Source: Marsupella aquatica (taxonomy: Eukaryota; Plantae; Marchantiophyta). Taken from it: 64,000 bases of DNA. The DNA is taken from contig OZ316899.1 in the NCBI GenBank assembly GCA_973895155.1, positions 4,157,241 through 4,221,240 of the forward strand, given 5' to 3'. The position numbers and the translations under genes are program-made. This document shows, in pieces, positions 1 to 64,000 of this stretch. The notes below the pieces were generated by a model. That model searched no databases and had not been told where the DNA came from. It was given only the letters and a program-made list of their open reading frames with translations. How positions within the stretch are numbered: position 1 is the first letter of the stretch; every line of letters starts with the position of its first letter.

Positions 1-954
1 ATAACGCTGGAACTCCGGGATGAGGCATGTCCTCATCAAGAATCCGTTGTCCACTGCCCCCTTGGCCGAGAAGATAGAGGACTGATATTTGGCTCCCTTG
101 CCCCTAGGAGCCCGCAACTCTACCCAGTTTATTCCTTTGGGTAGGCCGAAAATCATCTTTAGACGTGCCTCATTGAGACACATCACTCTCCCGTGCGCTC
201 GGGTTTGTTGGCGGGCTTTTTCAAAGTTCTAAATAAACTCCGTCATATCTTGCCCGTAGTACCTGCTTCCATTCCAAGGGAGAGAGGCGAGGTGCTCAAA
301 CCCTTGGGTCTTAAGGTAGCATGCATGCTTGGGGTGGAGGATGTTCTTGTGGACATTCTCCCCCATGCGATGCATGGTCAGCTTGGCCACCGCAACTGTG
401 GCCAAAGGTAGCCCGGATATAGTTGCAGGTTCCTTTCTCTTCCTACCCCGAGACTGATTCCCGGGGTGACTTGAAGAGGGGGACATTTCCCCATCCTCCC
501 TATCGGGTGCCGGTAGCGCTACCGCCGTAAGTATTGGTGCGGGGGCTGCTACAGTCACCGTGTTATCCCCTTGGGCTTGTTGTATTGGCGCCGGGTTGCT
601 TGGCGCATGCTGATTTGCACCCGGCGGCCACCGGTTTAGGGGAGGGTGAGCCTCCTCGTCTTCAGAACTAATGTTCAACGCGTTTACCATGGATCGCACT
701 CGGAGGGGTGGTGCAACCGGTGGTGGAGATCAGCCTGGCTGAGGCCGAGGTGGTGTTGGCGTGGATACTGATGAGTTGGCGCCGGTTGTAGCTGGAGGAG
801 GCGCCATCAGATTCAGGAAGGTTGCGGGGAGGCCGAGTGAGGTCAAGATAGGTGATCCACCTGTGGATGCGGTACCAAACTGGTAGTCTATGGAGGCCTG
901 GACTTTGGCGGGGATGTGATTGAAGTGGTGTTGTTGTAAGTCGATCGTGCTCAA
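1..954 (-). pseudogene. TE accessory ORF remnant (plant-mobile-domain / Transposase_32-like), truncated by window edge
   Basis: ORF 229-699 reads through one in-frame TAG (EFI*NFEKARQQ...LKMIFGLPKG) to base 1. The LASLPW...EF...N...FGLP pattern resembles ORF 43814-44503. Family call is from memory. Confidence 0.4.
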
Positions 955-2899
955 GAGTGTGAAGACTTTATCCAGAAGCCAAAGGAGTGCCTCCTGGAAA
1001 CCAACGTACTTTGGACCGTCAAAGAAGTATTTGGATATCTTGTCGGGACGACAGAGGTTGCTCTAGAACGGGAGGCTGAAATCTCCGTTATAGTGAGAGC
1101 GCCCGGCGAGACGGATGAGTCATTCGTAATGCCTTTCGGTTTTGTATCGATGCGGATTGACCTTGGCTAGTGTCTTCGCTAAATGATTCCCAATGGATAG
1201 AAATTGAAGCCAAAACCAAAGGGCAGAATTGGACATAATAGTGACAGACATATAGGGGAAAGGCGGTGGATGACTAAAGAACAGATGAGTGAGCTGGGAT
1301 TGGAGCTGGCACAACGGGTGAAGTGCTGGTGCTTTGCGAGAGAATGGCCCGCCTTTTATACCCAGGGAGCTCGTCAGCCAAATGGCCCCCTCCTCCTTCT
1401 GATAGGCCGATCCTTTCACGCTTGCAATGTACCAGCCACTCCGCAAGTCCGGGTCAAAGCGTGTCAACGAGCCGCCCCTTTGACTCTTTATACGGACCCA
1501 AGGGGACATCCCTACACGCCCGAAACCCGGAGTCACAAATGGCGCTCTGCCGCCAGCCTGAGCGTAAATGCCCCTTATTAACTAATGATTCCCTAGTCAT
1601 AAGTACTACCTACTTAGTGTCGTTATGCTAATAACTATGGCCTATGGTGCCCCTAATGTGCGTGCTAAGCACGGGCTAGGCCAAATCAGTCATTAACCAT
1701 CATGTTGGCGGCGTCATAGAGATATAATGTATCAATATTTTAGTATAAGTCTCATGTAAAGCAAGCTTGGGCTCCAGTTGGTGGAAAGTACATTGGGCAG
1801 CTGATCTGACAACAAATTCTCTCCTTTTGCCTAGTGGAGAGCTCTTAGCTAGATCCATTGGAGAGATTCACAAAAATCTAAAGAGATTATCCAATTTCTT
1901 AACCAATACCTTGATTTTTTTAGAAAGAGTTACACTAATGAGACATCAATAGCATATAAGGAAAGATTTCCTCTTGTGAGATATTGGGCAAGAATTGTGG
2001 AGTTGTTGACAAATGGGCTTGCACTAGACGGGGAGGGAAATATTAAATTTCACTTGAAAAATGGATTTTGGCCTAAGACTAACCATGGCACTGGTTACAA
2101 GGTCAACCAATTGACATGCTAACAACGTGGTCCTCCAAGTGAAGATGAGGAGAATGAGATGACAACTCTTCAAAATGAGGCCTTGGAAGAGATGGAAGAT
2201 CAAGCAACACCATTTGTTGGATCTTGAACAAAGAGAGAACAAGGACAATGGATTCCCCTACAGGATATTTGTGAAGAAAAGTTTGTGTTTCTTCAACCCG
2301 AGGATGATTGGGAGAATAAAAATGGTGGAGGTTATATCTGGTTTGCGAGAGCTTAACTTTGGGTTTGGTGGACCCTAAGAATGAAGTCCCAATTACATCT
2401 TCAATAGACCCTCCTTTGCCTCAACAATATACTCTAATGTTTCCAAACAAATGGTGGAGGCCTAAACACTCTAAACTTGATGTGACTGAGAGTGCTCGGT
2501 ATCTAAACTATTTATTGTCCACTAAAACATGAGAACAAGATCCAGGGTTTGGTGAGAACACTCAATATTGGCAGTATGCAGGTTTTGCAATTAATGTGTG
2601 GTTTTAAATATGGAATGAAAGAAGCAAATATGGCATGCAAAGATCTGAAGATTCCTTGAAAGAGTTGTAGGACTCGAATATCTTAACACTTAGCTCCAGC
2701 GTTGCTGACTCCAACGCCAAGCTCCCCTATGGTCCAGGCCAAAAATGGCCATCTGGGGAAGAGTTAGCATAGGGAGACTAGTGGGCAATGGGGCGTGGCA
2801 CTGGCAAAGGCAAGGCGCTAAGTTGATGACACACTAAGGAGTTAGACTAGCTGGAGGGTGGTCGGGTCAGGAGAATGGGCCGGACTCAAGGTCAACCGT

Positions 2900-3751
2900 T
2901 GTCACGTGGACTTTAAGTTAGGGGCTCCTCGGGCAAACTACACGCTTCTGGCTGCGATCAGGACAGGTGACAAGCACTTTTCGGAGCGAACCCTCACTCC
3001 TTTATATTTTTTTACTTTTCTCACAAAGTTTACAATAGGTGCCCTCAAGTAAGCTTGCCCGCAAGAGTCTGGTAGTTGACCCTACGGCGGGCCGCTACCT
3101 CTCACTTATCGGGTAGAACTCCTCGAGTGACTAACTACTCGAAATCTGACGGAAAAACTATCCTCCTCGGTTCACAAAAACCAAAACTCGACTAGCTACT
3201 CCTCTAGTCTAAAATAGCTCGCACGGAACTCGGGCCTAGACCAACGAGGCTCCAAACTCGAGAAATTCCAGCCTAGATCAACGAGACTCCAGACTCGAGA
3301 AACTCCCCGCCTGGATCAACAAGACTCCAGACTCGAGAAACTCCCCGTCTGGATCAAAAACTCCTTGCCTGGATCGAAAACTCACTCAAAACTCCAAAAC
3401 CGACGCACAACAGCCGAGTCCCGCAGAATGGAGCGAAACTCACAGAATGTAATTCAACCGACCTGAATAGACAACCGTTAACCTCAATGAGTCGAGGCTC
3501 AAGTCTTAAGTAGCATCAGAAACCCAACCATCCAGCCTGAGCCAGCTGCCATCAGCGAGGCTCATCCAAACTCCAAGCCTAGTGACTCACCCAAACACCA
3601 AACCTGGTGACGATGAGTCACCCAATCACCAAACCTCAATCCATCCAACCAAGCAGCCCCTCCGAGTCAGCATGCATGCAACCCAACCGGGAAGCCTCGT
3701 CCATCATCCCCTATAAAAGCCATTCCTGAGCCGAAATCATTCGGCACGACA
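2900..3751 (-). repeat. Element B 3' LTR, containing ~38-bp internal tandem repeats
   Basis: TGTCACGTGG...GGCACGACA. About 17 substitutions versus 16292-17143 by eye (15 transitions). Repeats of GCCTGGATCAACAAGACTCCAGACTCGAGAAACTCCCC at ~3235-3375. Confidence 0.95.
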
Positions 3752-3760
3752 TCCTCCCCC
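3752..3760 (-). other. Element B polypurine tract
   Basis: GGGGGAGGA on the minus strand abutting the 3' LTR. Confidence 0.9.
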
Positions 3761-3796
3761 AGTAAACCTGAGCAGCCTCCGGTCTGCTCCAATCCT

Positions 3797-6555: not shown

Positions 6556-7030
6556 TGTTGAGCATAGACGACGATCGCAACGGCAAGCCCATGAACCATC
6601 CAACGCACAATAGTCGACACAAGAGATACGTGGTTCACCTCCTTGAGGCTACGTCCACGGGAACACACAAGAGAACTTTACTGAACTCTAAGCCCGTCGG
6701 CTATACCGAGTCTCCACAGTGTAAGCTCTCCCTATCTCTCAAGTGGCTCCATAACAATGAGCCTTGGTTCTACCTCTCCAAGCACACATGCCTCTTATGA
6801 TATAGTGTGCAACTTAGTTGTACCTAACCACATAGTTGTACCTAACCACATAGTTGTACCTAATCACGTAGTTGTACCTAACCACATAGTTGTACCTAAT
6901 CACGTAGTTGTACCTAACCACATAGTTGTACCTAATCACATAGTTGTACCTAACCACGTAGTTGTACCAACCCACGTTGTTGTACCAACCACGTCATACC
7001 TAACCTAGACGTAAGAGTAAATACCCAACA
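6556..7030 (-). repeat. Element C 3' LTR
   Basis: TGTTGAGC...ACCCAACA, followed by the PPT (AGGGGAAGAT on the minus strand) at 7031-7040. Confidence 0.97.
6815..6995. repeat. 18-bp tandem array in the C LTR (also at ~12945-13125)
   Basis: About 9-10 units of TAGTTGTACCTAA(C/T)CAC(A/G). Confidence 0.95.
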
Positions 7031-7221
7031 ATCTTCCCCTTGACTCTGGTCTAGGGGAGAGTAATACTGCCAATGTATATGATCCCTCAGCGGGAAATTC
7101 TGGACAGAAACCAAACCGGTTTCCCTCTCTAACTAGAGCAAACCAGAACTAAGCCGTAGCCTAATACATAGGAATGAGGAAGAGCATATATCAGTAATTA
7201 CAATGAATGTTTAAGAAAACT

Positions 7222-12685: not shown

Positions 12686-13160
12686 TGTTGAGCATAGACG
12701 ACGATCGCAACGGCAAGCCCATGAACCATCCAACGCACAATAGTCGACACAAGAGATACGTGGTTCACCTCCTTGAGGCTACGTCCACGGGAACACACAA
12801 GAGAACTTTACTGAACTCTAAGCCCGTCGGCTATACCGAGTCTCCACAGTGTAAGCTCTCCCTATCTCTCAAGTGGCTCCATAACAATGAGCCTTGGTTC
12901 TACCTCTCCAAGCACACATGCCTCTTATGATATAGTGTGCAACTTAGTTGTACCTAACCACATAGTTGTACCTAACCACATAGTTGTACCTAATCACGTA
13001 GTTGTACCTAACCACATAGTTGTACCTAATCACGTAGTTGTACCTAACCACATAGTTGTACCTAATCACATAGTTGTACCTAACCACGTAGTTGTACCAA
13101 CCCACGTTGTTGTACCAACCACGTCATACCTAACCTAGACGTAAGAGTAAATACCCAACA
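12686..13160 (-). repeat. Element C 5' LTR
   Basis: Same 475-bp sequence as 6556-7030. Confidence 0.97.
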
Positions 13161-14877
13161 CAAGCTTCCATTCTTCTTTCTCACCGTAAACCATCTGTTC
13201 GAGTAGGGAGCATCAGACCTCTCGAGAATCCTAGCACTCAGCTTCTACTTAAGCAGTTCCGCAAGCTTTGGAGCTAAAGCCCGCGGAACCAAAATCGGTT
13301 TCAGATCCCACGGAACATGAGGGATGGTAAAGATGACCATCGGTGTCACCTTACTCGGATCCGCACAACCAATCTCCTCAATCGAAAATGAGAATGCCTT
13401 ACCATGCTCCATTATCATTTTTCAAAATGCCACTTGCTCCACCTCCGTAAGTAACCCATCCGAACCAACCTTTAGCTTTGCCAAACTCTCTTGAGTAAAC
13501 TTATGCCCTATCCAACCAGTTGGCCTCAGCCTTGGTTCCAATCTCGCTCGATCCATAACCTCCATCGCATCATCTGGCAAAGGTATCGCCGCCGGCCTCA
13601 CCTTCTTGTCGACCGTTTTGTATTTGGTACTCGAGTATACAAGCACGGCCATAGACGAGTACTGCCTTTCCAACTCCTTCTCCAGCTTGTCCATTCCCAA
13701 GTTAGACTCCGCACATTCGAGTGGCTCTTCCTCTCCATTATCCATCATGTTTTCCCTTTCACAAGGAGCTAAGGAACGAGCACTCCACTGATCCACTCTT
13801 TTCAGCGAAGTGCCAAGTCGTTTTCCGGACCTGGATCGGAATCGACACTCTCAGTCCTCAACCCTTTCCTATTCCTCTCGTTTCCAGGTAAAACAGCCGG
13901 AAATTGAACCACCTCTTTCCCATCTTTGCTCCGAACCTTCACCATGAAGGTAGTATCATCCAGAACCTTTGTCTCCATCCTCCATTCAGTGATGAACGGC
14001 ATGCCCAGTATCACCGGAAACGACAAGTGCTCATGAACAAAAATGTTGCAAGCCTACTTGACATTCCCGAACTTCACCATCACATTCGGACATCCGCCCC
14101 AAAGATAGTCCTTCATTGAACTGACCGAGTTCACACTCCAAAGCAACTCATTGTCCACCGGCCAATTCCCTTTTTGAAACACCTTTGGATCCATCAAGTT
14201 GATCTCCGAGCCAGTATCAATGAGCGCCCGCACCTTGCCTTCCATTCCTTCCAACTGGCACTCGCTCTCCGGACTTGCTCGAGCCCAGTATCCATCCCGG
14301 TAAGCGTAACCGTTCCCCTTCATTGAGCCCATGACATGAATGGTCCTTGACTCCGCGGTAATGCTTTCCCATTCTCCCCATTCGGTCGGGTCCCTGTTTG
14401 CCACAGACTCAGTTTCACTTTCGGCTCCCATGAGGTCCTCCTCCGCATTGAAGAACTCAATGTCCAAGTCCATGGGCTCCTCTTCAAGGGACTTGACCCC
14501 CTTCGGTTTTCCCAAGTCTGACTCTTCAGGGACAGCAAGCTTACTACCTGAACCCATGGACACCCCAGCAGTGTAAGTTTGGAAACTTCCAATTTCCGTC
14601 TCGCCAGCCTCCCACATCAAGGTGTGAGGGCCCTCCTTGTAAATCCGTTTCCTCTTGGATCTCTCCAAGATCGCTTCCTGGATCTCTCCAAGATCGCTTC
14701 CTGGATCTCTCGCCTCATACTGCCAAAGAACTCGGCGTTGGTAAACCCTTGAGCCTGTTGGCTCCAGAACTTCTCAGCTACAACCTCCGGGTACATGGTC
14801 TGGTCCACGTCCCTGCCAAGCACCCAGCCCGGGTCCTTCCTGATCGGTTTCCCTTTTTCCGGCTCTTTCTCGCTCAT
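13161..14877 (-). pseudogene. Element B protease and RT N-terminus, with frameshifts and stops
   Basis: ALIDTGSEINL aspartic protease, ILGMPF, YKTVDKKVRPA, and PYSNRWF. A 23-bp tandem duplication at ~14657-14710 shifts the frame. Confidence 0.85.
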
Positions 14878-35711: not shown

Positions 35712-35860
35712 CTACTTGGTCCTTGGTCCTTGGTGGGCTATCTACTACCTGGTCCTTGGTCCTTGGTGGGCTATCTACTACCTTGTCCTTGGTCCTTGGT
35801 GGGCTATCTACTACCTAGTCCTTGGTCCTTGGTCCTTGGTGGGCTACCTGGTCTTTGGTC
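35712..35860. repeat. 33-bp tandem repeat (~4 units) built from CCTTGGT subunits, in TnpD intron 2
   Basis: CCTTGGTCCTTGGTGGGCTATCTACTACCTGGT units. Confidence 0.9.
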
Positions 35861-43600: not shown

Positions 43601-43813
43601 GCTCATTTTTGTTTTGGGCTTTGTTTGCGATAATTTTATCAGAATTGGTGTAATAGCTGTCTAAATTAGAAACTTAGAAATAATGAAAAAAATTTAAAAT
43701 TTTGTAGTTAGAAATAGATTAAACATAGCCAATTAATCTACTTTTAGATATAAGTAAAGTTAAGACTTAAGTTAGGCAGATTAGTGGATAATACCCTGAG
43801 TTATTAAGTAGGG

Positions 43814-46682: not shown

Positions 46683-47198
46683 CCTATTCCATCCTTCGAG
46701 TCAGGATTAGTCAATCTCCACCATTTTTGTTAAATAGTTATCATAGTTAGAAAAGTCTCATACTTTTCCAGGAGGTAGCTCTTATCTAGCAGACCATACC
46801 CTGAAAGTATCAACTTAAACCGACATGTAGTTTAGAAGTTATAGCATTTTTAATTTTTCTTAAGCGTGATTGCGCAAAGGCACAACGGCGCTACGATGCC
46901 AAAGCACAAAGGCGCTTCCGACACTTAGAAAATTTTCCGGAACAGTGTATTTTTTATCCAACAGCACTTTTCACCTATTTTATTAAGGCACTTAGACACC
47001 TGAAAAGTCTGAAATTTTGCCAGCATGTAGCATGTATGTAAACCTTCCGCCTGGAAAAGTTTCACCCTATTATGACCTTTATGTTAGAAATTAAAATGCC
47101 AATAAACTCACTATTTATTAGTTTTGTCACAAAAATGCAAAAACACTTTCAATCCAGTTTACACTAGGGATAACTTTTGGTTAGTTTTTCATTCCAAG

Positions 47199-50100: not shown

Positions 50101-53100
50101 GCTCCTGGTGGTCTTCCCCGTTTTGCTCTTGGTGCTGTTTTGGAGGCGGGGGTCTTGGAGATCTGCACTTGTGCGGGTATGTTTGCTGCTTCTACATGTG
50201 ACCTTGTCACGTTTGCCGCGCCATTGAATGAGTCGGGAATTTTCTCTAGCATCTCATTGAGGTGGAGGATTTGTCTGACTTCTTCATCTGCTCTCTTGGT
50301 TCTTGGATCTTGGTTAATGAGGTTTGGGTTATTCCAATTAAGGTTCTGGTGGATCTGATCGTGTAATGTTGCTTTTGTCGATAGTGTGGGAATTGGTCTT
50401 CATAGAAATGGCAGTCTTGGTGTCGAGCTTTGAATAAATTTGATGTGGTAGGTTTGAGGTATCGGATGATGGATGTGGAGTCAAATCCTACGTATATGCC
50501 TGGGTGTCGTTGGGGTCCTATTTTTGTCCTTTTAGGTCCTAAGATGGGGACCATAACTTTGCATCCGAATATTCGTAAGTGTGATAAGTCTGGTGGCGTT
50601 CCTAATGCTAAGTGATATGGGGTCTTCGAGTTATATGCGGACGGTCGATATTTGAGTAGAGTTGATGCATGGAGGATAGCATGTCCCCAGGCTGATAGTG
50701 GTAAGTTTGAGTGCATTAACATTGGTCTTGCCACCATTTGGAGTCTTTTAATAACTGATTCGGCTATGCCATTTTGGAAGTGTACATGTGGGACTGAGTA
50801 CTGGGTATCTATTCCAGCTGTCCAACAGAAGTCGCCGAAGGCTTTAGAAGTGAATTCTCCTGCTCCATCTACTCGTAGTATACGTGTGGGGTGCTCAGGG
50901 AACTGAGCTTTTAATTTTAAAATGTGGGCCAATATTCTTGCAAATACCAAGTTGCATGTTGAGAGTAGGGAGATCTGTGACCATTTGGTTGAAGAGTCGA
51001 TGAGTACTAGGAAGTACTTGAATGGGCCACTAGGAGGGTCAATAGGTCTGCAGATATCCGCATTAAGTTGTTCTAAGAAGTTGGGGATTTTATATTCGGT
51101 TTTTGGTATCGATGGGCATGTTATCATTTTGCCTTGTGAGCAGGCCATACATTGTGTCTTCCTGGAGTTGGGTTTGGCCATCTTGGGGATTCCTGTGGAG
51201 TCTCTAATAATTCTGTTGTACATGTTAGTTCCAGGGTGACCGAGCCTGCAATGCCAGGTATGTGTTATGTCTGTTGTGTCTTGTTCGAGGTGGTATGCTT
51301 GGATATGAGCTGCATATAGGCCAGGTGGTATTAAGGGTAATATCTCCATAATTTGTGGTATGCCTACCGTTTCTTGGAGTATTTGCAGGGTTTCGGTTTC
51401 ACCATGTTTTTCTGTTCTCAATTGGTATTGGTTCGCGCGTATGTCTTGAAAGCTGATTAGGTTTCGTGTAGCTGTTGGGGCATATATTGCAGCTGCTATA
51501 TTTATTTTGGTTCCTCCAGGGAGTATAATTGTTGCTTTGCCTTTGCCTTCTTTGATTTGATTGGGTCCGGCGATTGTTGTTAGAGTTCTGGAGGATGGGG
51601 TGATATATTCAAAGTATTTATTATGTTTTAGTATTGTATGTGAGGTTCCGCTGTCGATGATGCCTATATTGGGGTCATTAAGTGGTGGGTGCTGCAGGTT
51701 TGGTGTAGCTGTATGTGTTTCTATTTGCACTTCAGTTTCGTTGTATGCTGCGATATCCTCTTCGATTTCCATGTAGTTGCCTTGTGGATTTTGTCTCGTT
51801 TGGTTTCTTTCATTAGTATATCGTTGTGCCTCCTGGTCTGATGCTTTGCAGTCTTTCCTAATGTGGCCTATCTTGCCACATCTGTAACATAGTTTTTGAT
51901 GGTTACTTGTGGTCTTGTTTTGGAGGTTTCGCCATCTGCCACTGCCTATGTTCGGTCCGCGTGTCCATATGTTTCGAGGTGGTAGGGACGTACGAGTGCT
52001 CGAGGGGTGGTATCGTCCTTGTCCCTGACTTTTCCTCTTCCTCCCCTAAATGTTGTTTGGCCTCCATTGTTTCCTCGTCTTCCGTCGTTATAGCTGCCAT
52101 AATTTGCTTCTGGCCGATGGGGTGGTGGATCAGATCCTGCAGGTCTTTTTCTTGCATTATGAAGTGCTACTATTTGTTGTTTCTCTTCAACTAATAAGTG
52201 GGCTATAAGGTCCAAATAAGTCATACAATTCATATTTCGATATTGGGTTCCCAGTGCTATGTTGGCTTCTGGGAATGTTGACAATGTTTTGTCAATTCGG
52301 TTGTTATCGTTTACTGGATGGCCACACATTTTGAGTTGAGATGTAATTCTAAATAATGCACTGTTATAGTTTGCGATTGATGTGTGGTCCATGACTCGCA
52401 GGTTATGCCAGTCCCTTCGTGCTTCGGGGAGCCATATTTCTCTCATATGATCAAATCTTGATTTGAGTTGGTCCCATAGCTTGCGTGGGTTTACCTCATT
52501 CATATATTTATTCTTCACTTGTGGTGATAGGTGTTGTCTCAACAGGAATGTAGCGTTAGCTTTCTGTTTCAGAGTTAGATTTGCATCTGTATATAGTGTG
52601 TCTTCCAACTCTTGGGATGCAAAATATATTTCGACGTCTGTTATCCATGTCAGATAATTGGAACGGTCGACTTTTAGTGCCGGCTAGATCAGTTTCTCGA
52701 CTGTATTCATCTTTGATTATAGGTTGGAGGTCGACTTGATGTCTTCTATAATTGTAATATCTCGCACATTATCAGTTGCGGATCGGAATTTGATTTAATT
52801 CTGTCTCAATCGTGTCTCAATCGTTTTCGATCCTGGCATTCAATTTGGGTTTCTATTGTATCTTTGATGTGCAAAAAAAGGGATAAGAAAAATTAAGACT
52901 GCTTATCTAAGGGATTGACTACTATGAGTAGACAAAAAAATCTTTGGAGTCTGCTCGGTAGGTCAAGATTTGGGTCGAATCTTGGAAGGTAATCGGGGGC
53001 TATGGCGAGTAAAAAAACGGTTGGGGCAGTTATATATTAAGAAAGTGAACCATAAAATGATGTTATCCTCGTTGAAACATTGAGTCATCTATTCTATATA

Positions 53101-53273
53101 TTTTTGTGTAGAGCATACACGTGCTGGTAACGTGTTGTGAGACAAGGTTTTTGATCATAATAATAGATCACTCACTCCATTAAGGTATGGCTTTATATAG
53201 CCATTGGGTTACATCATATAAGGTTAAAGGTAACCTTATTCTAGGGTTAAAGAGTAAACTATGGTTTACAACA
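47199..53273 (-). mobile_element. Element E: Ty1/copia, Bianca-like, disrupted pol
   Basis: Identical 141-bp TG...CA LTRs (47199-47339, 53133-53273), PPT AAGGGGGAG (47340-47348), half-tRNA-type PBS CGTTACCAGCACG (53120-53132), and imperfect TSD CCAAG/CCAGA. Confidence 0.92.
48096..52608 (-). pseudogene. Element E gag-pol in at least five pieces
   Basis: IIDSGTSHT protease, WHCRLGH, CMACSQGK, VDGAGEF, QNGIAES, ARLVAKGY, LYVDDVN, TKHIDPKFF. Confidence 0.92.
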
Positions 53274-54234
53274 CCAGAACATTCTAGTGAACCTTGAGTA
53301 CTCCTGTAACATATTTTCATACTTTTTACTTTAGTTTATGACCCTTAAGATATGAAAGGGCATGTCCTTTCATTATCTCTTTTCCCTTTAGTTCCTCCTA
53401 CCCTATATGTAGTAGACTTTATGTCACTTTTTGTGTGAAGAAATTTCATGAGCGCTCAATTGCAAGATTGCAACTTTGTTACCTCCATTTGTAGCAAGCA
53501 CTCCATTGCATATGAGTACTTAATACAAAGGAATTCTTCCCCCTTCAAGTCTAAATGAATGAGAAGTTTGGACCCTTGAAGTAAAATTATTATGATTGTT
53601 AAATCTTTTGAGTATGTGGAAATAGATTCCTTGTTGGTGAGTTTCACATATTCCTTAGTTTTTGATGCATAGTTTTTGACGTGACATTGCTTGTGCACGG
53701 GATGCAAAGATCGTTACTTACCAATTACTTATGGCTTCAAATTTGATCATGATGGTGTCTCTTATTTGTGACACAAAGTACCGATTGGATACAAAAGTGA
53801 TTGATTACTAGTCTCCACTCAGTACCTTGGAAGGAAAAGTTGAGACATGTTGACGGCATTTTAGTAATCATCCTAGTACCGTAATCCTTTCTAGAAATGT
53901 TCTTGCGGATATACCACCTAAATCATATCAAATGAAGTTATGTTGAGGAGTCACCTTGGTTGTTTCCTAACTTCCTCACCATACCTCAAGATTTTCATTG
54001 TGTTTTATTAATTGTTTCCATTTGTTAATTTTATTTACAATGTTAAGCAAACATTCAAAACTATGTCTTGCTGAGCAACCACAGTAAAAGGCTCAACCTT
54101 TGTGTTTTTGTCACCTTATTCATTCATAAGTGCTAAATCATAGAAAATCATTCCTTACATGTTCTTCCATGGGAACGAATACCGAGTTTTGGATCTTAAA
54201 TGTTTATTTATGTCCCTAGTGTGATACTACAATT

Positions 54235-55233
54235 GGTATGGCTCATGGATTGACCTAATGCTTGTATGTGAATGAGCACTTTCTGAGTTGTAGCAATAAA
54301 TTTATCGATGTTTGCATTGTGAGTGACTTGTCCTTGTGTTGTATTTCCGCTATTGGTGTTTTTTTGTTCCATGGTTTGTCAGAGTGATAAATTTATTGCT
54401 CCTTGCATTGAGATTTGCAGACTTTGTCATCATGGGTCCTAGTGGAAAGAGTGGATTTTCCGAGGCTGAAAGTTTCATGACAAGCCTCACAAACGCAATT
54501 TGGACAAGTGAAGACATTTGTGAAGAGGTCAAGTTCAAGAAACCCTGGTACTTTCGGGACGCCAGGTTACAGTCCAAGGATATGGCAGGCTGTGAGTCTC
54601 CTATCCTTTGGGTCCAAATGCAAAAATCCTCAAAGGTTACTCTCTCGTTTGGCCTGGTCGTTAGTGTGGAAATTTGTAAGTACTTGATTAGCCAGGGAGA
54701 GGCAAAAGTGTTGAAAGAGTGCCTAAGTTTCTTGACAATGTGTGGACACAAGGGATTCACCTCTGTCATTGTTACCATGGAGAACTTTCTTGAGAAATCC
54801 CTTGAGAGTTACCCAGAAGACCCGCTTGTCGCGGAAGTTAGGATAGCAAAAGTAATGAATCTTATGGTCCCAGCTTGGGTGTGCTAGTTTGTCCAAGACT
54901 GTGATCTCATCATGCTACCAAGGTGAATGCAGAGTACAAGAGGCTCACAGGTGAAGAATTCAGACCCATCCAGAAAATAGTTATTAAGAGGCCTGGTAAT
55001 CGAGAGTGGAGCTTTGTTGGCAAAAAGCGCTGGAGGTACTACTCTGGACAAGCACGCAACTGGTCTGAGGAAGGGAAGTGGAAGGGGGAAACGGAGAGGA
55101 AGAGGGAACACCAGGGTAGATACCGCTGGTCCCTCTGAGGGCAGGAGAAGGAGCCAGGGGACTGGTGTTAGTGGAGGGGGAGGAAGGGGCAGCGGCAGTC
55201 ATTGAGGTTGTGCAGCTAGTGCAAGTTTAGGTG
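54235..55233 (+). repeat. ~1 kb coding module, copy 2, directly upstream of the MTase gene
   Basis: Homologous to 42580-43600. The frame continues past one TGA to ~55430. Confidence 0.88.
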
Positions 55234-55600
55234 TTTCAGAAGCGCCTTCCATAAATGGAAGCAAGAGTAGAGGATCCAAGGGATCGGGGCCATCTGGTTC
55301 TGGAGTCAACGTTAAGAGGAAGAGAACGGGCTGGAGTATATCCATAGCCCTGGAAGGAGTGGTAGCCCCAATCAATATGGAAACTCTGGTTATTGCCGAG
55401 CACTTGCCTCATTTGGATATACAAGCCAAGGTTCCTTTCATTCAATCAATAAGTATTACCAACCTTTAATTTTCTTTTGACAAATGAGGATTCTGATAAA
55501 AATCTCGCGGTTACTTTCATTATCTAATTTTGGATGATGTTTTCTAGATTGACGAAGAGGAGGAGACTGCTCTTTTGGGTATGAGACTAACGCCATCAAA

Positions 55601-57870
55601 GTGGAGCTCAGTCTGTTGATGCAACAAAGGGTTCAAAGGACAATTGTCCTCTTACATGTCGACAATCTAATTTTTTATGAAGTTGGAGAGAAGTCAACTT
55701 TGATGAGACCAGTGGACAAATTGCATGTGGAGAATATCAAGATTCTTCTAAGGAAAACCCCCACTTCAGCGCACTGTTTGTCCTGTGTGTGGATCCGAAG
55801 GATTGTCCCACAATCCAGGACTGGGATATTCTAAAGTCCAGAGTATGGAAGTATAGAATTATTAGAGGGAATCATGGTGCTCGGGCAAAGGCCAAGTTGT
55901 ATAAATGTATGGGAAGCAGATTTATGGTGAGCTGGAAGCTTGGGTATACGCTAGACTTACCAAATCGGAGGTTGGGCTTCCAGCACAATTATGACCAGGA
56001 GTATAGGAAGAACATGACTCATATCGGCAGAGTTCGTGCGTGCCACAATATCTTTGTTGAAATTGATGTGGGATCAACCAAGGATGTTTGCGAGGCTTGT
56101 TGTTAGGAATGTATGCTGGAATACACTCCCGGCGTTTGTGACACCATGGCCAAACATGACCTAATGTTCCAGATTGCTTTCCAAACCAAGGAAATTTGGG
56201 ATCTTCAGGAGAAAATTTTCCAGATGTGGGAGAAGGGGACTGTCTTGGGACAACCCAAAACAATTGTGGCAACAACAAATGCAAAGGGAAAGGTCAAACC
56301 TTTAATGCTGAAAGAGATTAAAATGAATAAACTTGCAGGTGACCTCAATTTAAACACTTTTCGAGGTCTTCAGGATTGTCAACTAAGGAGCATGTTAAGC
56401 GTCTGTTGAATAGGGTCATTGGGAGAGTGATCACCTTGGAGCATATGCACAAGGAAGGGGAAAAGCTAGAAAACTTTCCAAGGTGAAAAAATTATTTTTG
56501 TAGATATCTGGGTAGCCCAATTGGGCAACAAAAATGTTTCCAAATGAAACGGATGTTTTGTTGTCGTGGGAACATGGGTTGAGAAGTTGAGCAAAGCGGT
56601 AAGCACCCGTCTCGCCCCAAGATTTTTATCGGCCTTGCCATTCCATTAGTAGATTTTTTGTATACCTCGTTCCATTCAAAAATCATCCCAAGATTTTTAT
56701 CGGCTTTCGTATTCGTCAAGCAATTTCATTCTAATCAGAATCGTGTGCGACCTTTGTTACAGCTGGAGATTGGGTCAAAGCAGAAAAATAAAGTTGTTCC
56801 GCTTGTCCAGTATCATTTGGTGAGGGAGGTTATTGTTCCCTCCATTGGCATCCCATATGTGTTCAAGAATTTTGTGCTTGCTACAATTGATAGGTACAAC
56901 CGGCCCCAGGCGTTAGGCTAGGACGCGGGAGAAGCTACGGAGCAGATATGGGAAAATGCTGATGGAGATTCTTTCCTTTACTATCTCCATGTTGGGGATG
57001 TTCAAATTTTGGATTCTTTTGTTGAGGCAAGACCTTACACTCTTGCCATCGCCGACACTCCGTATGGTTTTAATGCACCTGGTTTGGAGTTTGATGAAGT
57101 GTCCTTCACTGAAAAAGATGTTGTAGATATGGTAACAAGTTTTTCAAACATGATGACTGCTAAGCACTGGAGGTTTGTTGTGATCCATTCACTACAACAA
57201 AAATATGGTCAATGTTTGCGCTTGAGACTGTGTGCAACTATGGGGTTGAGTCTAGAATTTGGGAGAAGACCGACATTCATGAGCGTCCCGCCGGTGCTCA
57301 GTTGGCATGGGCTTTTGAAAACTGGTCGATTGGTTTCTACAACAAGGAAGACATCTGGAACATGAACATGTACAATTTCCAATCGGATGAGTCTTGCATC
57401 AATATCATCAAGGTTCCATGTGTAACCAAGAAGTCTGTTGATCCGTTAGGATATGTTGTGAACCCGTATCAAAAGTCTGTTGGTTTGGGTGCTTGGTTCA
57501 TTACTCATTTCTCTGAGAAAAATGACTGGGTTATAGATCTTTGCTGTGGAATTGGATCCATATTAGCTGCTACTCTTCTCAATTCTTGCTAGAGTTGTGC
57601 GGTCAATAAAAGTTCTTTGTAGATTGATTTTGTGAGAAATCGGATTATGACTCTGGAGTCAAACTAGAATTATATGAGGAAGCGCAGATTGAAGGGCAAG
57701 GCGACAAAGATCTAGAGACTCAACCACCAATTGGAGGCCAATTGGGAACATTGGGGACTTTGACTTTCACTATTGAAGTCGTGAAGGAGATCGAGGATGA
57801 AGAAGAAGCTGAAGATGAACCTCCCAGAACGCCTAATGAGGATGATCGCAATGACATGTTACTGGATTAG
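55601..57870 (+). pseudogene. ParB-like + beta-class N6-adenine/N4-cytosine DNA methyltransferase, intron-containing, disrupted
   Basis: N-terminal RPVDKLHV and YRIIRGNHGARA (ParB-like). Then HVGDVQIL, AIADTPYG (motif IV), NPYQKS, and DWVIDLCCGIGS (motif I after motif IV, i.e. beta order). Phase-0 GT-AG intron at 56599-56738. Confidence 0.82.
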
Positions 57871-57914
57871 GAAATTCTTATCTGGTTGTAGGATAGTTAG
57901 GTTAGGTTAGGTTA

Positions 57915-58165
57915 GGTAATTTATCGCAATTACGTTTGAACCCGATAAATTTATCGGACTTTGCATTCCACTCCTTTTTTTGTCACGGTGTTTTAGCTGG
58001 GGGAATGGAGTTGTCGATAAACTTGTTAGGTTGACGTTTGAACCCTAATAAACCCCGATACATTTATCGGACTTTGCATTCCACTCCCTTGTTTGTCAGG
58101 GTGTTCTAGTTGGGGAATGGAGTTGTCAATAAACTTATCGGACTTTGCATTCCACACTCTAGCTG
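57915..58165. repeat. Spacer repeats containing palindromic CCGATAAATTTATCGG
   Basis: TTATCGGACTTTGCATTCCAC occurs three times, between the convergent MTase and transposase genes. Confidence 0.85.
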
Positions 58166-58348
58166 GTTTGTCATTTCAAGAATTTCAAAACTTCTTGAAG
58201 GTTAATGGATCTCAAAAAGAAAGATAATTATAGCTTCGGAGAACAACATAGTCCCAGATGTTCACGACTGCGACCATCCTCATGGGAATAGATAACCATC
58301 ATAACTATAACCATTATAACTTAAAAACTTTTAATCTAGCTTCTACTA

Positions 58349-61186
58349 TCAACGACTAGTGTGTACGTCCATCATTGCATTTTGAATGATTTGTCTTGTT
58401 TGTACAGAGAGAGTGCTATTTGCCAATAAAGCAAAGTTATACACATAGACTGTAGTTTCTGCTAGGGATAGTTCATCCTCCAGTACTTTGTTTGACAAAG
58501 CCTCTTTCTTCAGATAATATCTGTCATCAATTGCAGACTCCTCTTCTGAATCCATTGCATACCAAGTGATTTTAATTTGCTCGGGGATGTCATTAATTTT
58601 TGTGAGAATCTCAATGACTTTTGCCATCTAGAATGGTCTCCCCTTTGGATCCTGATGGGCTGCTACACATATCATTGCATATTTAGTATTCACCTCTAGA
58701 TTCTTGAAGCCTCCAATTTCCATGACTTTTTTCCAACTTCCTGAAATACATGACTGTCCTCACACCTGCTATTTTATCAACCAAGATAGGTTCCATTTTT
58801 GCTTTCGTAGGATTGGTCGTAGGTTCTCTCTGTATGTTTATCTTGGGCCAACTCCAATCAAAACTCCACTATGCAGGTTTCAGGTGGTGTTGAATCACTT
58901 CTTTTTGTTTGTCAAAAAAACAAACCCACCATAGCCAATCTTCGTCGTCAGAGTAATTGAATCCATCTTCAACTGCTCTCCAATAGTTTTGAAGAGTCAT
59001 AAAATGATTTTGCGCCGCCCGCTTATCTTGTTCCTCAATATCATTCTCTTGATCATCATTGTCTCTTGCAACTCCCGTGGCAGACTTCAATGCCATTTGT
59101 GGTGCAACCCACATTCCAGATGTAGGAATGGACCAAACAAATTCCACGGGCTCCCCCCAATATGTTGTCATTGAAAGATGTTTGGCATGGAAGATGGGCC
59201 AAGCAGTTCCGTTTTTGAGTACTCTCATAATCCAAAATTGTTCCTGAGCACTTATGTCGTGGAGAGTACGCAAAACATGTCCATTCATATCCTTGTTATT
59301 TGCTTGATCGTTGTCAGACACAAACGTTTTGAAATTGGCAACCTCATTGACAAAAAATATTTTTGCCGCAGGATTGTAGGATTCCTCTATGATTGCAAAA
59401 AGAGTCTCCAACTTAAAAGCCTTTTGCTTGTTCAATTTTGAAGAAAACTTGCTAAACATATGATTAATTTGGTCATGAGTATGCCCAACCAACAGAAAAT
59501 CAACCTTTATTTTTTGGAAAACACCTATCTCCATCAACATGTTCAAATATGCCATAAGATATTTGTTCTTGTTTTCTTGAGCAGTGTTATCAAGCTGGAG
59601 GTAAAGCACTGGAGGGAGCGGACCTTCCCAGGTATTCAAAATATGCTGAATAACGTGGATGGTCAGGTTGCTATCATTGTGAATATTTGGATAGTTCAAA
59701 AAAACATTTGAACTCAATTGTTTGTTGAAGATCAAACAACCCACTATGTGTATAGGGATGAAATACTTCTCATCCATGTTCTTTGGACACCAAATAAAAT
59801 GAGGTAACTCTATCTTCTTTTGATCCATGCCATCAATACAGATGCCCTAATATTTTTCAAGACTCTTGCAACATTTTCTCCGGTGCTTTGCTCCTCTCCA
59901 CTACTTGTGCCTTCCAATGCTCGTTTAGCAATGTTGAGAATTTTCCTACAATAATAAAAATGTTCAAAACTTTGTTGGCCTGACAACGATAAATTTATCG
60001 GGTTCAATATTCAAACACTTGATTCAATCACCGTAATGTTAAACCGTGACAACGATAAATTTATCGGGATAAGTATTCAAACTGTTCAAACAATATATTC
60101 ACACACAATTACCAAAGAAGAAGCATTTGAATCCTCAACCCGATAAAATTATTGGGAGTAACACACGGGTTTAGAAACTTACTCTTTTCTGCTTTGGGTG
60201 TTGCTTTATCATGAAGTGCTTTGAATTCAATATAGGGCGCAGATGGAGAAATGACTCCTTTTGGGGGGATGCGCATGCAAGGAAACTCCTTGTTCCAAAT
60301 GCAAACAGACCACAAATATGTCACACCTTGTTCTTGGCGCATGAGAGTTTTTGACTATAAGACATCAAAACATTCTATTTTTGTCCAATTGTCAAGTAAA
60401 TAAAAATATCCTTGTTGGGGAGACTCTTAACATTTGTGGTAAAAAATTCATCTAGCCACTGAACTAGACCAAGATGTGCGGTCAATTTTTCTCTACAAAA
60501 TATATCGATCTGTATCCAAGAAAACATGTTTTTTGAGATTTTTGGAGATGATTATTTCCAAGGGAAAATAATTTCTTAAAGCCACTCCAACAAAAGGTCT
60601 TCCACTAACTGAGTAACCACTTGCACCGACATGCCCACCCTTCACACATCCTCTTAGAAGTACGTTCTTCACCTGGTAGGACAGTTCCTCACATCCTAGA
60701 GACCCAAATTCCTCAGACATAAATGATCACAATAGGGATACTTAAAAATTTCTTTCATTTTGTTTCTATTCAATTTATCATTTATCACATTGTCTTTCCT
60801 AGTAATTCGATCTCTATCTTGTTTACTGGGCTCATTTGACTTCTCTCTAGCCTAAAATCCAATGAGGTCATTGGCATTTTTGGGTCCTTCAGGTAGCTTG
60901 CGAATAGATGCATCATTCTCTGCTGAGCTACCATCCTCCACCTTGACGCATTTAGAAGGGCACTGAAAAGGTGACTAAAACTATTCTCTTCTACATCTCC
61001 TAAACATTCAGACATAACTTGTGCTATTATATCGGATTCTCTATCTCCTTCCTGATCTTTGTCCTTTGATTGACTCAACTCATCTGAAAACACAATTGGA
61101 CTCCTTGGATCTCTATACATAACCCAAACGCCACTAAGACCTAGACTCCTTGACACTTGAAGCCTGGAACCAATCACAATCCACAC
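58349..61186 (-). pseudogene. DDE transposase, DUF7869/Sola-type, multi-exon, disrupted
   Basis: IDGMDQKK.ELPHF, LYLQLDNTAQENKN, FLLVGHTHDQINHMFS, and upstream W..EFP..RIP. The superfamily name is inferred. Confidence 0.7.
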
Positions 61187-61195
61187 TAGAGAACT

Positions 61196-62659
61196 AGTCG
61201 TTGAACTCGACTACCTTAACACTTAGCTCCGGCGTCGCTGACTCCGACGCCGAGCTCCCTTATGGTCCAGGCCCGGATAGGCCATCCAAGGAGGACTTAG
61301 CATGGGGAGACTTGTAGGCAATAATACGTGGCACTAGCGAGTCAAGGAGCCAAGCTGAGGACAAACACTAAGGACTTGGACTAGCTGATAGCTGGTCGGG
61401 TCAAGGGGAAATTGGCCGGGCTCAAGGATGGCCGTCCGGACCTCCGGATGGACTTTGAGTTCTGAGGGCTGCAGTGTGAGCTCCTCTTGGGCCCAAGGTC
61501 AATGAAGTTGACGCCATGGGCAACGGACGCTTGGGGCGCAAGTTATGGCACGATCCGGGTTGGGCCGGTCGGGGCCCCAAGCAGCGATGAGACCTAAGGG
61601 CCTAGGCATGAGTACTGGGTGGGCCCGATCACAATGGGCTAAGGCACTCTGCTTGCGGATGCCTAACGAGAAAGTTATGAGCGTTGCCAATTGGTGGCGC
61701 GCCCATTATGCGCGATAGAATCCGGGTTGGGGGCCAAATGTTTAGAGACCAAAGCTGGTTCGGGGGTGGCAGGTCTCCAGAAGCATATATGAGAGGAGTG
61801 GTGTCTCCCTGGGGGCTAAGGGCGAGCCGAAGTCGTGAGCCGCGGCGGTCGCGACACTAAAGGAAACCGCCAAACAGAAACGGCAATATCTTCCCAATGG
61901 GAAGTGCGTTGGAGGACTTCTTGGGTGAGTTGGAAAGCCCTCCTGAGCTCAGCTGGGTCTGGGGCACCTTGGGTTCTTGGAGTTTGTGGGTGTTAACTCA
62001 CCCGCTTGCCCAATCCTGTCGAACAGCAGCCAAGCCGCGTTTAGTCTCCCAAGGGAGCTTGCGTTGGGGAGGCAAGGCCAAGTAGGTATGGAGGTTGAGT
62101 TCCAAGTGTGCTAGGTCCCTAGACCGTCAGTGGGGCAAGTTGGGAGTTGGTTGTACAAGGCGGGGCCATTCTGGTCTCGACGTGCTGGGACAAGCTTTAG
62201 GACAAGCTACGCTATTTGGGCCATGAGCATGTCTTGGGGTCAGGGCGGTCAGTTGGTGATGGATAGGTACGAGGGGGAACCCGGGCCGCGCCCAAGGAAG
62301 GAGTTGTTCTAGACAAACAGTGGGCGTGGGTTTTGGTTCCGGCTTATGGCATCGGGAGGACCTATTGCTGACCTATTTACCAATGTCTGTTGAGCTTGAG
62401 TTGGGATGCTAGACTTGGCAAGTTCTAGATCCTGAGGGGTTACTTACCGAGGTGCTTGGTTGCTTGTGCAGACAGTGAGGACTGTTGAGTAGCGCTCATG
62501 TAGGTGAGCAAGTGCGGCTTTGTATGGGAGGGGCCGCTGGTAGTGCAAGGGGCACTAGGGAGCTTGCTCAAGATATTCTGTGGAGGCATTCGGGCACCAG
62601 GGTCACTTAGGTGTGAGTGCTGGGATTGGTGAGGGCACTGGGTGGCTTGGTCCACCATT
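61196..62659 (+). repeat. Solo family-A LTR, 1464 bp, 5-bp TSD GAACT
   Basis: GAACT|AGTCG...CCACCATT|GAACT. Confidence 0.95.
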
Positions 62660-62961
62660 GAACTTTGAGAAGCTTCTGGAACTCGGAACGGTGAACTATT
62701 CACACGTGCTGTCCCAATGACTCTGCAAGCTGCAGGAAAACTGAACACTTATTGACCACGATTCCCAAGGACCATTTGGGAAAGGGCCGAGTCTAGACTT
62801 TGCAATCCATTCCCCCGCTTGCTCATACCTCAAGTCCAGGCAATGCAAAGACCAATCGTCGTATCGGTCTTTGTATTTTTGCCTCCTATTCCTCACACGG
62901 AGACTGAAAGATCCATCATTGAAGGTGAGTTGAATGTGACGACTTGAATGTTGAGTGCGAT

Positions 62962-63489
62962 TGGGACAAGCTTTAGGACAAGCTACAAAAACAAGGTGTT
63001 TGTGTGGACACAAGATTGCGAGTTAGCATTCCTAGAACTCAAGCGACTAATGATAACGCCGCCAATTCTAAAGTTACCTGAGATGGGAAAGCCCTTTGAG
63101 ATTTGGACAGACGCAAGTGATTATGCCATTGGCGCCTGTCTTCACCAAGACGGGCGTCTTATGGCCTTTGAGTCATGTAAGTTGGAAAATCATTGGATCG
63201 CCCCGGAAAGGGAAATGTATGCAGTGATCTATGCATTGAAGGAGTGGGAGATGTACCTTAAGAACAATCCCAAGGTGATAATACACACAGATAGCTTGTC
63301 GGCCGAGTACTTCAGTTCTTACCCAAGGCTGAACCCCAAGGAAATGCTTTGGCAGATGTTCTTGGCAGGCTTTGATTTCAAAGTCTGTCACGTTCCTAGG
63401 AAAACAAACATGGCAGTTGACGCTTTATCACATAGGGACCATCATTGTGTCAATGGGATCACAATGCTTGAATCTGAGTGGCCAAAGGT
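62962..63489 (+). pseudogene. Isolated family-A RNase H fragment fused to a 25-bp piece of A LTR
   Basis: GGGACAAGCTTTAGGACAAGCTAC joined directly to KNKVFVWTQDCE...WTDASDY...SEWPK. Confidence 0.85.
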
Positions 63490-63560
63490 GTTGGTGTTAA
63501 ATGCCCAGTTTGACTTGCGATTAACGGACATCTAACTGCCTTCTTCACAGTATCTCCCGC

Positions 63561-63881
63561 TTAAACGATCAACCGACCTTCTAGCGGGGTACTCCCCTCT
63601 TCCTCTATATAGTCCCCGTAAGTGAATCCTACCAAGTGCTCTATAATGTCTAACTCTTCCTTCCACTTCTTGGGCACAACTGCTTCAGTCAACACCAGAC
63701 CCTCCCTGTAGATGATCTCGATAAACCCACACCAGTAGCGGTAAGTAATTAAACAGATGGGAATACTCTCCTGGCGTAACGCTCGGGTAATCAGGTGGGA
63801 ACCGATGGAACAGATCCACAATTCCAGTGGTCTTAACTTAATCAAGGAGCAAGGCTTGTCCTCCTTACTGTCTACATTCAT
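63561..63881 (-). CDS. Small unknown protein (106 aa), homolog of CACTA cargo ORF 31139-31458
   Basis: Intact ATG-to-stop ORF with conserved LRP.ELWIC.IGSHLIT...ESIPIC..TYR.WCGFIEIIYREG. Confidence 0.65.
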   Translation of the reverse strand: MNVDSKEDKPCSLIKLRPLELWICSIGSHLITRALRQESIPICLITYRYWCGFIEIIYREGLVLTEAVVPKKWKEELDIIEHLVGFTYGDYIEEEGSTPLEGRLIV

Positions 63882-64000
63882 GGTTGTTATAGTAGCAGTG
63901 ACCGGGGTAGGTCCTGCTGTCCCTCAATCGGCCTTCCTGGCAATCGATCTGTCTTTGGCTAAATCAAGCAATTTAAATAGAGGTATCCGTAGTAGGAACC

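Follow-up and report, generated by a model that had tools for sequence, protein, structure and literature searches.

Decayed Transposons of Two Unrelated Superfamilies in a Marsupella aquatica Contig, Each From a Family With a Methyltransferase Gene and Its Own Motif Arrays

Introduction

Two decayed DNA transposons, here called element D and region F, adjoin each other in a 64,000-nucleotide stretch of contig OZ316899.1 of Marsupella aquatica (assembly GCA_973895155.1, forward strand, positions 4,157,241 to 4,221,240). This whole stretch is referred to as the window, and coordinates given without a contig label refer to it. D belongs to the CACTA/EnSpm superfamily, while F is a Sola1-like element with a DUF7869 transposase. 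They are the relics of two autonomous DNA transposons from unrelated superfamilies, and each family stably carries a methyltransferase gene, presumably directed at proteins such as histones in D and at DNA in F, together with motif arrays of its own that vary between lineages. A first-pass annotation of the window had claimed that two unrelated transposons share this design, and the claim has stood, as enzyme and arrays are retained in relatives of both. The parallel design of enzyme plus array is real and heritable, and the comparison with related loci supports that both enzymes are conserved components of their transposon families.

The concept behind that annotation is sound, but it is already in print for algal transposons. 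The Ectocarpus transposon survey describes a giant Sola1 family, Sola1-1_Ec32, in which an accessory gene opposite the transposase encodes a ParB-like domain and a DNA methyltransferase, and its authors already suggest that the element's own sequence is bound and epigenetically modified. In the red alga Bostrychia, giant Plavaka elements related to CACTA/EnSpm encode PAG2, a PF01555 methylase with a SET domain, and PAG3, which combines a ParB-like domain with a 2-oxoglutarate (2OG) oxygenase. Tandem inverted-repeat arrays adjoin the ParB-like gene, and the preprint proposes self-binding and self-modification (bioRxiv 10.1101/2025.02.11.637652). The preprint also mentions SET cargo in HarbingerS and Helitrons, and another report describes SET genes in oomycete MuDR elements and TET/JBP genes in several fungal transposon lineages (PMC12730594).

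Compared by description, F resembles Sola1-1_Ec32 in having an accessory ParB-like methyltransferase gene on the strand opposite the transposase. It differs in being smaller (about 8-10 kb), in having an extra N-terminal exon, in its apparently land-plant-like genome, and in the lineage-specific palindrome arrays found in nearly every non-coding gap. D shares with Bostrychia Plavaka that a CACTA-related transposon carries a chromatin or DNA writer. However, D is a plant-type CACTA element whose apparently stand-alone SET protein of about 260 aa is encoded within the transposase gene; it is without a methylase or ParB-like gene, and its repeat is short and non-palindromic with an ACGT core. HarbingerS, oomycete MuDR, and Helitrons likewise have a SET histone methyltransferase as accessory gene, but they belong to other superfamilies and hosts, and the available parts of the sources report no link to motif arrays. 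The fungal KDZ/Plavaka transposons with TET/JBP genes are a further case of unrelated lineages repeatedly gaining a DNA-modifying enzyme; this enzyme is, however, an eraser or hypermodifier of 5-methylcytosine (5mC) and not a methyltransferase, and the part of the report at hand describes no motif arrays (PMC12730594).

Two well-known plant systems work through arrays as well. In the Arabidopsis VANDAL elements, the element protein VANC acts via short non-coding motif arrays on the element's own copies and changes their epigenetic state. For Spm, the element protein TnpA mediates demethylation, and En/Spm has both superfamily and subterminal-array anatomy in common with D. VANC and TnpA are not catalytic writers, whereas D and F carry methyltransferases, and no VANC homologue was seen. 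What is new here is a plant-type CACTA element in which a probably stand-alone SET gene is nested, a land-plant-like setting for the F family, a lineage-specific series of palindromes, and the occurrence of both families together in at least three sources.

Element D and Its Nested SET Gene

The boundaries and genes of element D are as follows.

28527-41911, minus strand: element D, CACTA/EnSpm DNA transposon, 13,385 bp, defined by its terminal inverted repeat (TIR), target site duplication (TSD), and an empty paralogous site near 62086
39126-41240, plus strand: second gene, divergent from the transposase
38103-38411, minus strand: transposase exon 1, with a Transpos_assoc zinc finger (CPCRRCKG...VSHLGIHG)
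37194-37974, minus strand: SET gene, located behind transposase exon 1 and ahead of the acidic exon, a pseudogene in the window
36727-37074, minus strand: acidic exon of the transposase
34857-35246, 33592-33921, 33132-33533, and 32177-32272, minus strand: further transposase exons
34105-34528, minus strand: transposase exon with Transposase_21
32642-33005, minus strand: transposase exon with DUF4218

The TIR is a perfect repeat of 14 bp, CACAACTACATTTT, found at 28527-28540 and 41898-41911; these are its only two exact matches in the window, one at each end. It begins with CACAA where the canonical sequence is CACTA, and is of the CAC(T/A) type. The 3-bp TSD, TGT, is located at 28524-26 and 41912-14. 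D has split one copy of a gypsy long terminal repeat (LTR)-like sequence into 27542-28526 and 41912-42489, with exactly the 13,385 bp of the element in between, while the uninterrupted paralogue at 61196-62664 has TAT at the place corresponding to the insertion, near 62086.

The transposase is of the plant CACTA tnp2 type, with Transposase_21 (Pfam match 34117-34317, E=7e-17), DUF4218 (32513-33028, E=1.8e-28), and Transpos_assoc. The last of these scores below the Pfam cut-off (E=3.9e-4), and exon 1 has collinear tblastx matches in the related contigs L006, L013, L020, and L021. The remaining transposase exons were placed by the Pfam matches together with tblastx collinearity. The second gene gave no match in a Pfam scan, but it is conserved in L006, L012, and L013. 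In L012 the divergent gene region (555-1010, minus strand) has a weak match to the Ulp1 protease family Peptidase_C48 (E=5.5e-4, 20.3 bits against a cut-off of 20.7); D in the window ends before any such domain. A 33-bp tandem repeat, reported as four overlapping copies, lies at 35705-35864 within D, upstream of the catalytic exons of the transposase.

The first-pass annotation had reported a SET exon in D, and this is borne out by Pfam: the window exon at 37194-37445 (minus strand) matches SET with E=5e-5 and 24.1 bits (cut-off 22.4), and the corresponding open reading frame (ORF) of L006 scores 26.1 bits. The window copy is damaged by a frameshift near 37735 and by two adjacent stops at 37446-37451, where relatives have Arg-Tyr. 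A word-index search with a 114-aa piece of the SET protein returned no match, whereas a library-wide search with an 84-aa piece returned 29 proteins, the best of them 58-64% identical, 230-300 aa long, and with the same ...VDYDWH end.

The D-family relatives have SET proteins that are 41-64% identical, encoded on the same strand and between the Transpos_assoc exon and the tnp2/DUF4218 exons. The order of SET gene and transposase is collinear with D in contigs L006-L011, L012, L013, L019, L020, and L021, and the full series of Transpos_assoc exon, SET ORF, and tnp2 transposase is retained in six further loci. The gene order of the family can be given as second gene, motif array, Transpos_assoc exon, SET ORF, acidic exon, and tnp2 exons. 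In the relatives the SET ORFs are intact, with the motifs GLGLF, GYINS, PNAEW, and EEIFVDY conserved. Three of them open with Met-Arg at the homologous position, which suggests that SET is made as a stand-alone protein of about 260 aa.

An AlphaFold (AF2) model built from a 19-sequence alignment has a predicted local distance difference test (pLDDT) value of about 90 over residues 75-260. A Foldseek search with it gave 306 PDB matches at E<=1e-3, and all 50 of the 50 listed are SET methyltransferases, led by LegAS4, NSD, MLL, SETD8, and SET7/9; the predicted structure thus confirms that the cargo family has a SET fold. EEIFVDY is conserved at the place of the ELxxDY tyrosine, while the NHS-type motif is replaced by a conserved YINS. 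LegAS4, a minimal but active SET enzyme, has YINFS at this place, and the two have in common a YINxS...NAE(F/W)VE variant of the cofactor motif.

Motif Arrays of Element D

Six ACGACGT(T/A)A clusters had been noted in D, and all six could be located, none of them outside the element. They were defined from matches to ACGACGTWA with one mismatch, and motif expectations here and below were obtained from shuffled sequence. No strand is assigned to the clusters.

28661-28894: cluster 1, left subterminal
31752-31990: cluster 2, 3' of the last transposase exon
34271-34702: cluster 3, with its core (34557-34702) within a transposase intron
38828-38955: cluster 4, in the spacer of the divergent genes
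40399-40618: cluster 5, probably in an intron of the plus-strand second gene
41525-41827: cluster 6, right subterminal

The window contains seven exact matches to ACGACGTWA where 0.36 are expected, all inside D. The 7-mer ACGACGT is found ten times in D and not once in the 50.6 kb outside it. In clusters 1 and 6, which are subterminal as in other CACTA elements, the short motif is repeated in either orientation. It was considered whether the internal clusters could be the ends of nested elements; this was ruled out as there are no internal TIR copies within D.

Cluster 4 has syntenic arrays in L013 (1328-1465), L006 (672-958), and L020 (612-869). L013 has nine copies of ACGACGT in the divergent spacer, and L020 a cluster at the corresponding place. 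In L006 there are 16 copies of a GACGTAA core, mostly as GAGACGTAA, which fall in the spacer, in one intron, and downstream of the transposase, while L012 has 11 copies of this core. For the D family as a whole the motif can be written (A/G)(C/A)GACGT(A/T)A.

Region F and Its Accessory Gene

The first-pass annotation described region F as a DUF7869/Sola-type element. The DUF7869 transposase is indeed present, but the region is not one intact element. It is a composite of three parts, a partial copy (F1), a copia insertion, and a second copy (F2) that is cut by a gypsy LTR. The F2 genes, two in number and convergent, were modelled by tblastn against intact relatives.

42562-43641, plus strand: F1, partial second copy of 1.1 kb, 87% identical to 54233-55215, with four decayed palindromes and a copy of exon A (42818-43363)
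47198-53274, minus strand: copia LTR retrotransposon inserted within region F, not part of the enzyme/motif system
54233-61195, no strand assigned: F2, decayed DUF7869 (Sola1-like) transposon, its right side cut by the gypsy LTR at 61196
54450-54923, plus strand: accessory exon A, N-terminal domain (tblastn to L003 436-1092)
55580-56516, plus strand: accessory exon B, ParB-like region (YRIIRGNHGARAKAKL), with two frameshifts and two stops
56757-57867, plus strand: accessory exon C, beta-class N6/N4 DNA methyltransferase (motif IV IADTPYG, motif I DLCCGIGS), with two frameshifts and three stops
58361-59891, minus strand: catalytic exon of the transposase (DUF7869), with stops at 59847, 58869, and 58628 and a frameshift near 58744
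60154-61138, minus strand: N-terminal exon or exons of the transposase, Cys-rich, heavily decayed, and truncated by the LTR at 61196

The transposase was matched through Pfam DUF7869 alone (ORF 58872-59846, minus strand, E=2.9e-45), and its acidic motifs DGMDQ, LDNT, and GHTHDQID can be recognised. Where relatives of this protein are named, they come from a fern, a liverwort, and a sponge. A hallmark of Sola1 is a 4-bp AWWT target site duplication (PMC3845634). No termini of F were found in the window or in ten related loci: inverted-repeat searches of L003 and the window gave palindromes only, and blastn between loci gave matches in exons only. F is therefore named Sola1-like.

The ten further methyltransferase-bearing loci are L001-L005 and L014-L018. 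A beta-class DNA methyltransferase had been proposed for region F, and the family bears this out. All members have ADxPYGF (motif IV) ahead of NPYQKPVxL...DLCCGTGS (motifs X and I), as beta-class enzymes do. The window fragment has only 18 bits for PF01555 (cut-off 26.7), but intact relatives score 30.3, 34.8, and 40.1 bits. The tetrapeptide departs from the canonical (D/N/S)PP(Y/F), being D-(I/V/T)-P-Y in all members with the first proline replaced. The leading D of D-x-P-Y points to an enzyme of the adenine-N6 rather than the N4-cytosine type. Marchantia DN4MT1 was rejected as a relative, since it has TSPPY where the F family has DxPY.

Methyltransferase and DUF7869 are on one contig in every locus that reaches the transposase side (L001-L005, L015, and L016; 7/7). 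The ParB-like exon has been retained in all eight loci that extend far enough upstream. In L003, L014, and L016 the accessory exons A, B, and C are found in collinear order, in L004, L015, and L018 the ParB-like exon is followed by the methyltransferase, and L017 ends inside the ParB-like exon. The accessory gene and the transposase are convergent in the window and in L001, L003, L004, L005, L015, and L016, and divergent in L002. L002 (3629-5009) and L018 represent a distant subfamily in which the transposase is only 42% identical to that of the window and the palindromes are unrelated.

Between lineages the F methyltransferase is 60-80% identical. Its nonsynonymous divergence (dN) is 0.18-0.33, similar to that of the transposase, while synonymous divergence (dS) is saturated in nearly all pairs, so that the constraint can be called strong in qualitative terms only. 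The suggestion that the enzyme genes could be one-off captures with dN/dS near 1 does not agree with a dN far below a saturated dS; enzymes that are still 62-75% identical when synonymous sites are saturated argue against such captures. IMG/VR and 185,579 prokaryotic genomes were searched with two exact signature peptides of the methyltransferase, which is an insensitive method, and neither set yielded a relative.

Palindromes of the F Family

The sequence GATAAATTTATC has four exact matches in the window against 0 expected. The 12-mer first reported for region F is the core of a 14-bp palindrome, CGATAAATTTATCG, and some copies extend to TTGAACCCGATAAATTTATCGGGTTCAA. When up to one mismatch is accepted, CGATA-N4-TATCG is found ten times against 0.52 expected, with all matches in 42562-60154. 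The sites had been described as many; they are clustered above expectation, but 'many' overstates their number in the window. F2 has three clusters, again without an assigned strand.

54294-54398: palindrome cluster upstream of exon A
57943-58140: palindrome cluster in the spacer of the convergent genes, syntenic with L001 3544/3606 and L003 3918-4246
59987-60154: palindrome cluster in the transposase intron, syntenic with L001 1684 and L003 6044

Both introns of the accessory gene also have possible decayed copies. Upstream of this gene in L003, the palindromes lie within a 72-bp tandem repeat with starts at 153, 225, 297, and 369.

Cross-locus blastn shows that nucleotide homology between F loci is confined to exons, the introns and spacers being unalignable. 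Palindrome arrays are nevertheless found in the gaps of every F locus, and 69 of 73 palindromes lie in the 38% of the sequence that is non-coding (p=4e-24). Their half-sites differ between lineages: CGATAA in the window, CGATAC in L001 and L003 (22 copies in L003), CGAGAC in L014 and L015, a mixture of CGAGAC and CGATAC in L005 and L017, and CCCGAT-N6-ATCGGG in L016. The palindrome is TTCAAGCnnGCTTGAA in L002 and TCATGAnnTCATGA in L018. A position that is conserved while the sequence changes agrees with co-evolution between the site and a dimeric DNA-binding protein.

It had been stated for both D and F that the motifs sit in introns of the element's own genes. This is true of some of them, while others are subterminal, lie in divergent or convergent spacers, or are found 3' of the transposase.

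The ParB-Like Region as Candidate Palindrome Reader

The most concrete route from palindrome to enzyme is a ParB-like domain in exon B, which the first-pass annotation had missed. Two blocks are conserved in this exon, ...VDPKDCP...W.Y.VIGGNHGARAK... and GDLNMGHWRALQGL, and GNHGARAK stands where ParB has the arginine motif GERRxRA that binds cytidine triphosphate (CTP). Single sequences gave no significant match to ParB in Pfam or PDB. Pfam HTH_ParB matched two of the ten members scanned, with E=6.7e-4 for the best member, while the first member had 14.6 bits against a cut-off of 22.6. A profile of the ParB-like family searched against PDB gave Spo0J as its sole match (E=0.21), and a structure model with a mean pLDDT of 55 had only ParB, Spo0J, or Noc proteins among its top 12 Foldseek matches, with E values of 0.3-2. 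Each of these lines is weak, but they are mutually concordant, and HHpred assignments published for homologous algal proteins agree with them (bioRxiv 10.1101/2025.02.11.637652; Ectocarpus transposon survey).

The combination of palindromes and a ParB-like region mimics the inverted-repeat binding of bacterial ParB/parS and of ParB-methyltransferase fusions. It differs from these in a similarity that is below threshold, in the replacement of the arginine motif, and in that no close prokaryotic relative was found in the two-peptide search.

Setting of the Two Elements

The window has the character of a transposon nest in a plant-like genome. Copia and gypsy LTR retrotransposons occupy 1-27.5 kb and reappear later. 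The ratio of observed to expected CpG is 0.61 for the whole window, 0.56 for D, and 0.46 for F2.

One gypsy LTR family is present in several copies. Besides the copy split by D (27542-28526 and 41912-42489) and the copy at 61196-62664, which truncates the F2 transposase gene, there is an inverted copy at 23189-25451, and a polypurine tract is found near 27530. Region F is flanked by two copies of this family in direct orientation.

The copia element in region F (47198-53274) has 143-bp terminal repeats that are 100% identical at both ends, which indicates that the insertion is recent relative to its decayed host element F. Another copia element has 18-bp tandem repeat arrays in both LTRs (6740-7062 and 12870-13192), and stretches of this LTR pair (6556-6855 and 12686-12985) are 100% identical. 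A run of ORFs of 231, 197, 358, and 261 aa follows F1 at 43808-46679 (plus strand). They were considered as part of F and dropped, as they have no Pfam match and no match to any F locus, and they may belong to another, unclassified element.

Self-Marking and Alternative Explanations

The arrays may be binding sites for a sequence-specific DNA binder encoded by the element itself. In F the candidate is the ParB-like/HTH (helix-turn-helix) portion of the methyltransferase protein itself, for which the palindromes would serve as parS-like sites, and in D the product of the second gene, which would be TnpA-like, and/or the Transpos_assoc zinc finger. Such a binder would keep the enzyme on the element's own DNA or chromatin, and the element would in this way mark itself in cis. 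The mark might tune or limit the element's own expression or transposition, or it might oppose host silencing. Judged from sequence, this mechanism is plausible, and self-addressed cis marking through motif arrays would be the best overall explanation, with a probability of roughly 0.55.

All enzyme genes in the window are pseudogenes, and all F2 exons have stops and frameshifts. Several observations weigh against self-marking. CpG transitions (C-to-T and G-to-A) account for most departures from the motifs, in D for 15 of 28 changes and in F for 10 of 16, where 10-15% would be expected. Decay of this kind is the footprint of host 5mC, so the window copies appear to have been methylated like ordinary transposons and not protected. 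Host methylation of these copies is to be expected once the enzymes are dead, and it gives no support for protection. CACTA elements carry subterminal motif arrays with or without a SET gene, and the D SET protein is without a recognisable DNA-binding domain, so that its link to the arrays is purely positional. As for F, termini were not found in any locus, and a share of the palindromes may simply be subterminal. The ParB assignment depends on sub-threshold scores and a low-confidence model, in which the supposed N-terminal ParB domain did not fold, and the Cys-rich N-terminus of the F transposase could read the palindromes instead.

A more specific version of self-marking holds that the ParB-like methyltransferase of F loads at lineage-specific parS-like palindromes and writes N6-methyladenine (6mA), or N4-methylcytosine (4mC), on its own DNA only, with binder and site co-evolving, and that D does likewise with SET recruited by a motif binder. 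A sequence-addressed writer would then have arisen twice and persisted in land-plant-like genomes. This full version is a tentative proposal and, on present evidence, rather doubtful.

The rival that survives best assumes that the arrays are ordinary transposase or TnpA sites, serving in subterminal binding and promoter autoregulation, and that the enzymes act elsewhere without guidance from the arrays, for instance on the chromatin of the host, on substrates other than histones, or on element DNA that has been excised or is replicating. In its favour, clusters 1 and 6 of D are subterminal arrays of the classical CACTA kind, and a promoter spacer holds cluster 4 as well as its counterparts in L006, L013, and L020. 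The conserved Cys-rich N-terminal region of the F transposase might be a DNA reader, and no DNA-binding domain is recognisable in the SET protein. On the other hand, the F palindromes are present in nearly every intron and spacer and not just at the ends, and they adjoin and lie inside the gene for the ParB-like methyltransferase. ParB-family proteins typically bind inverted repeats, according to the Bostrychia preprint (bioRxiv 10.1101/2025.02.11.637652). The pairing of enzyme and array has moreover arisen in two unrelated superfamilies. This rival is a serious one, though on balance somewhat unlikely.

It could also be that the palindromes are recognition sites of F's own methyltransferase, so that their methylation state would act as a switch and tie transposase expression, or the use of the ends, to replication, in which case ParB-like targeting would be unneeded. 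The Dam sites of IS10/Tn10 are a precedent for such a switch, palindromic sites are expected for the target of a dimeric or two-strand methyltransferase, and the palindromes are promoter-proximal and intergenic. However, the half-sites change fast (CGATAC, CGAGAC, and CGATAA, and unrelated sequences in L002, L016, and L018) compared with a methyltransferase that stays 60-80% identical, and sites of 14-28 bp are long for a beta-class enzyme. A switch of this kind is thus improbable.

Plant CACTA elements often capture gene fragments, and with every enzyme gene in the window broken it might be asked whether these are incidental Pack-type captures of host fragments without function, next to motifs that are chance or simple repeats. 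This is very improbable, given intact ORFs in many divergent relatives, saturated dS, conserved catalytic motifs, and a gene order conserved in six (D) and ten (F) further loci. Nor are the motifs equally frequent in unrelated DNA, a possibility raised in the first-pass annotation: their counts are far above the shuffled expectation, the D motif is absent from the 50.6 kb outside D, and the F motif is confined to F. That region F is an integrated island of viral or prokaryotic origin, or an assembly contamination, can be dismissed almost entirely: prokaryotes and phages are where ParB-like domains and PF01555 methyltransferases typically occur (Ectocarpus transposon survey), but the F gene is interrupted by introns or spacers, has plant-type copia and gypsy elements around it, stands together with a DUF7869 transposase, lacks relatives in the prokaryotic and viral peptide search, and occurs as several diverged copies in one metagenome.

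Implications for Transposon Biology

D-type and F-type elements are found together in at least three sources, namely the window, ERZ12295330 (L001/L019), and SRR33386723 (L002/L020), which suggests that the two families share hosts. Two independent designs of enzyme and address array that adjoin each other in one genome, with both families present in two further samples, support self-directed marking of chromatin or DNA as a recurrent transposon strategy, and carry this strategy beyond the algae into an apparent non-seed land plant. If the proposed targeting is true, the pair of ParB-like region and palindrome would be a compact, programmable tether for a DNA methyltransferase, and it could also be one origin of the 6mA or 4mC signals of plant genomes. 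The lineage-specific palindromes, together with naturally intact proteins, make up a ready-made comparison of specificity between cognate and non-cognate sites.

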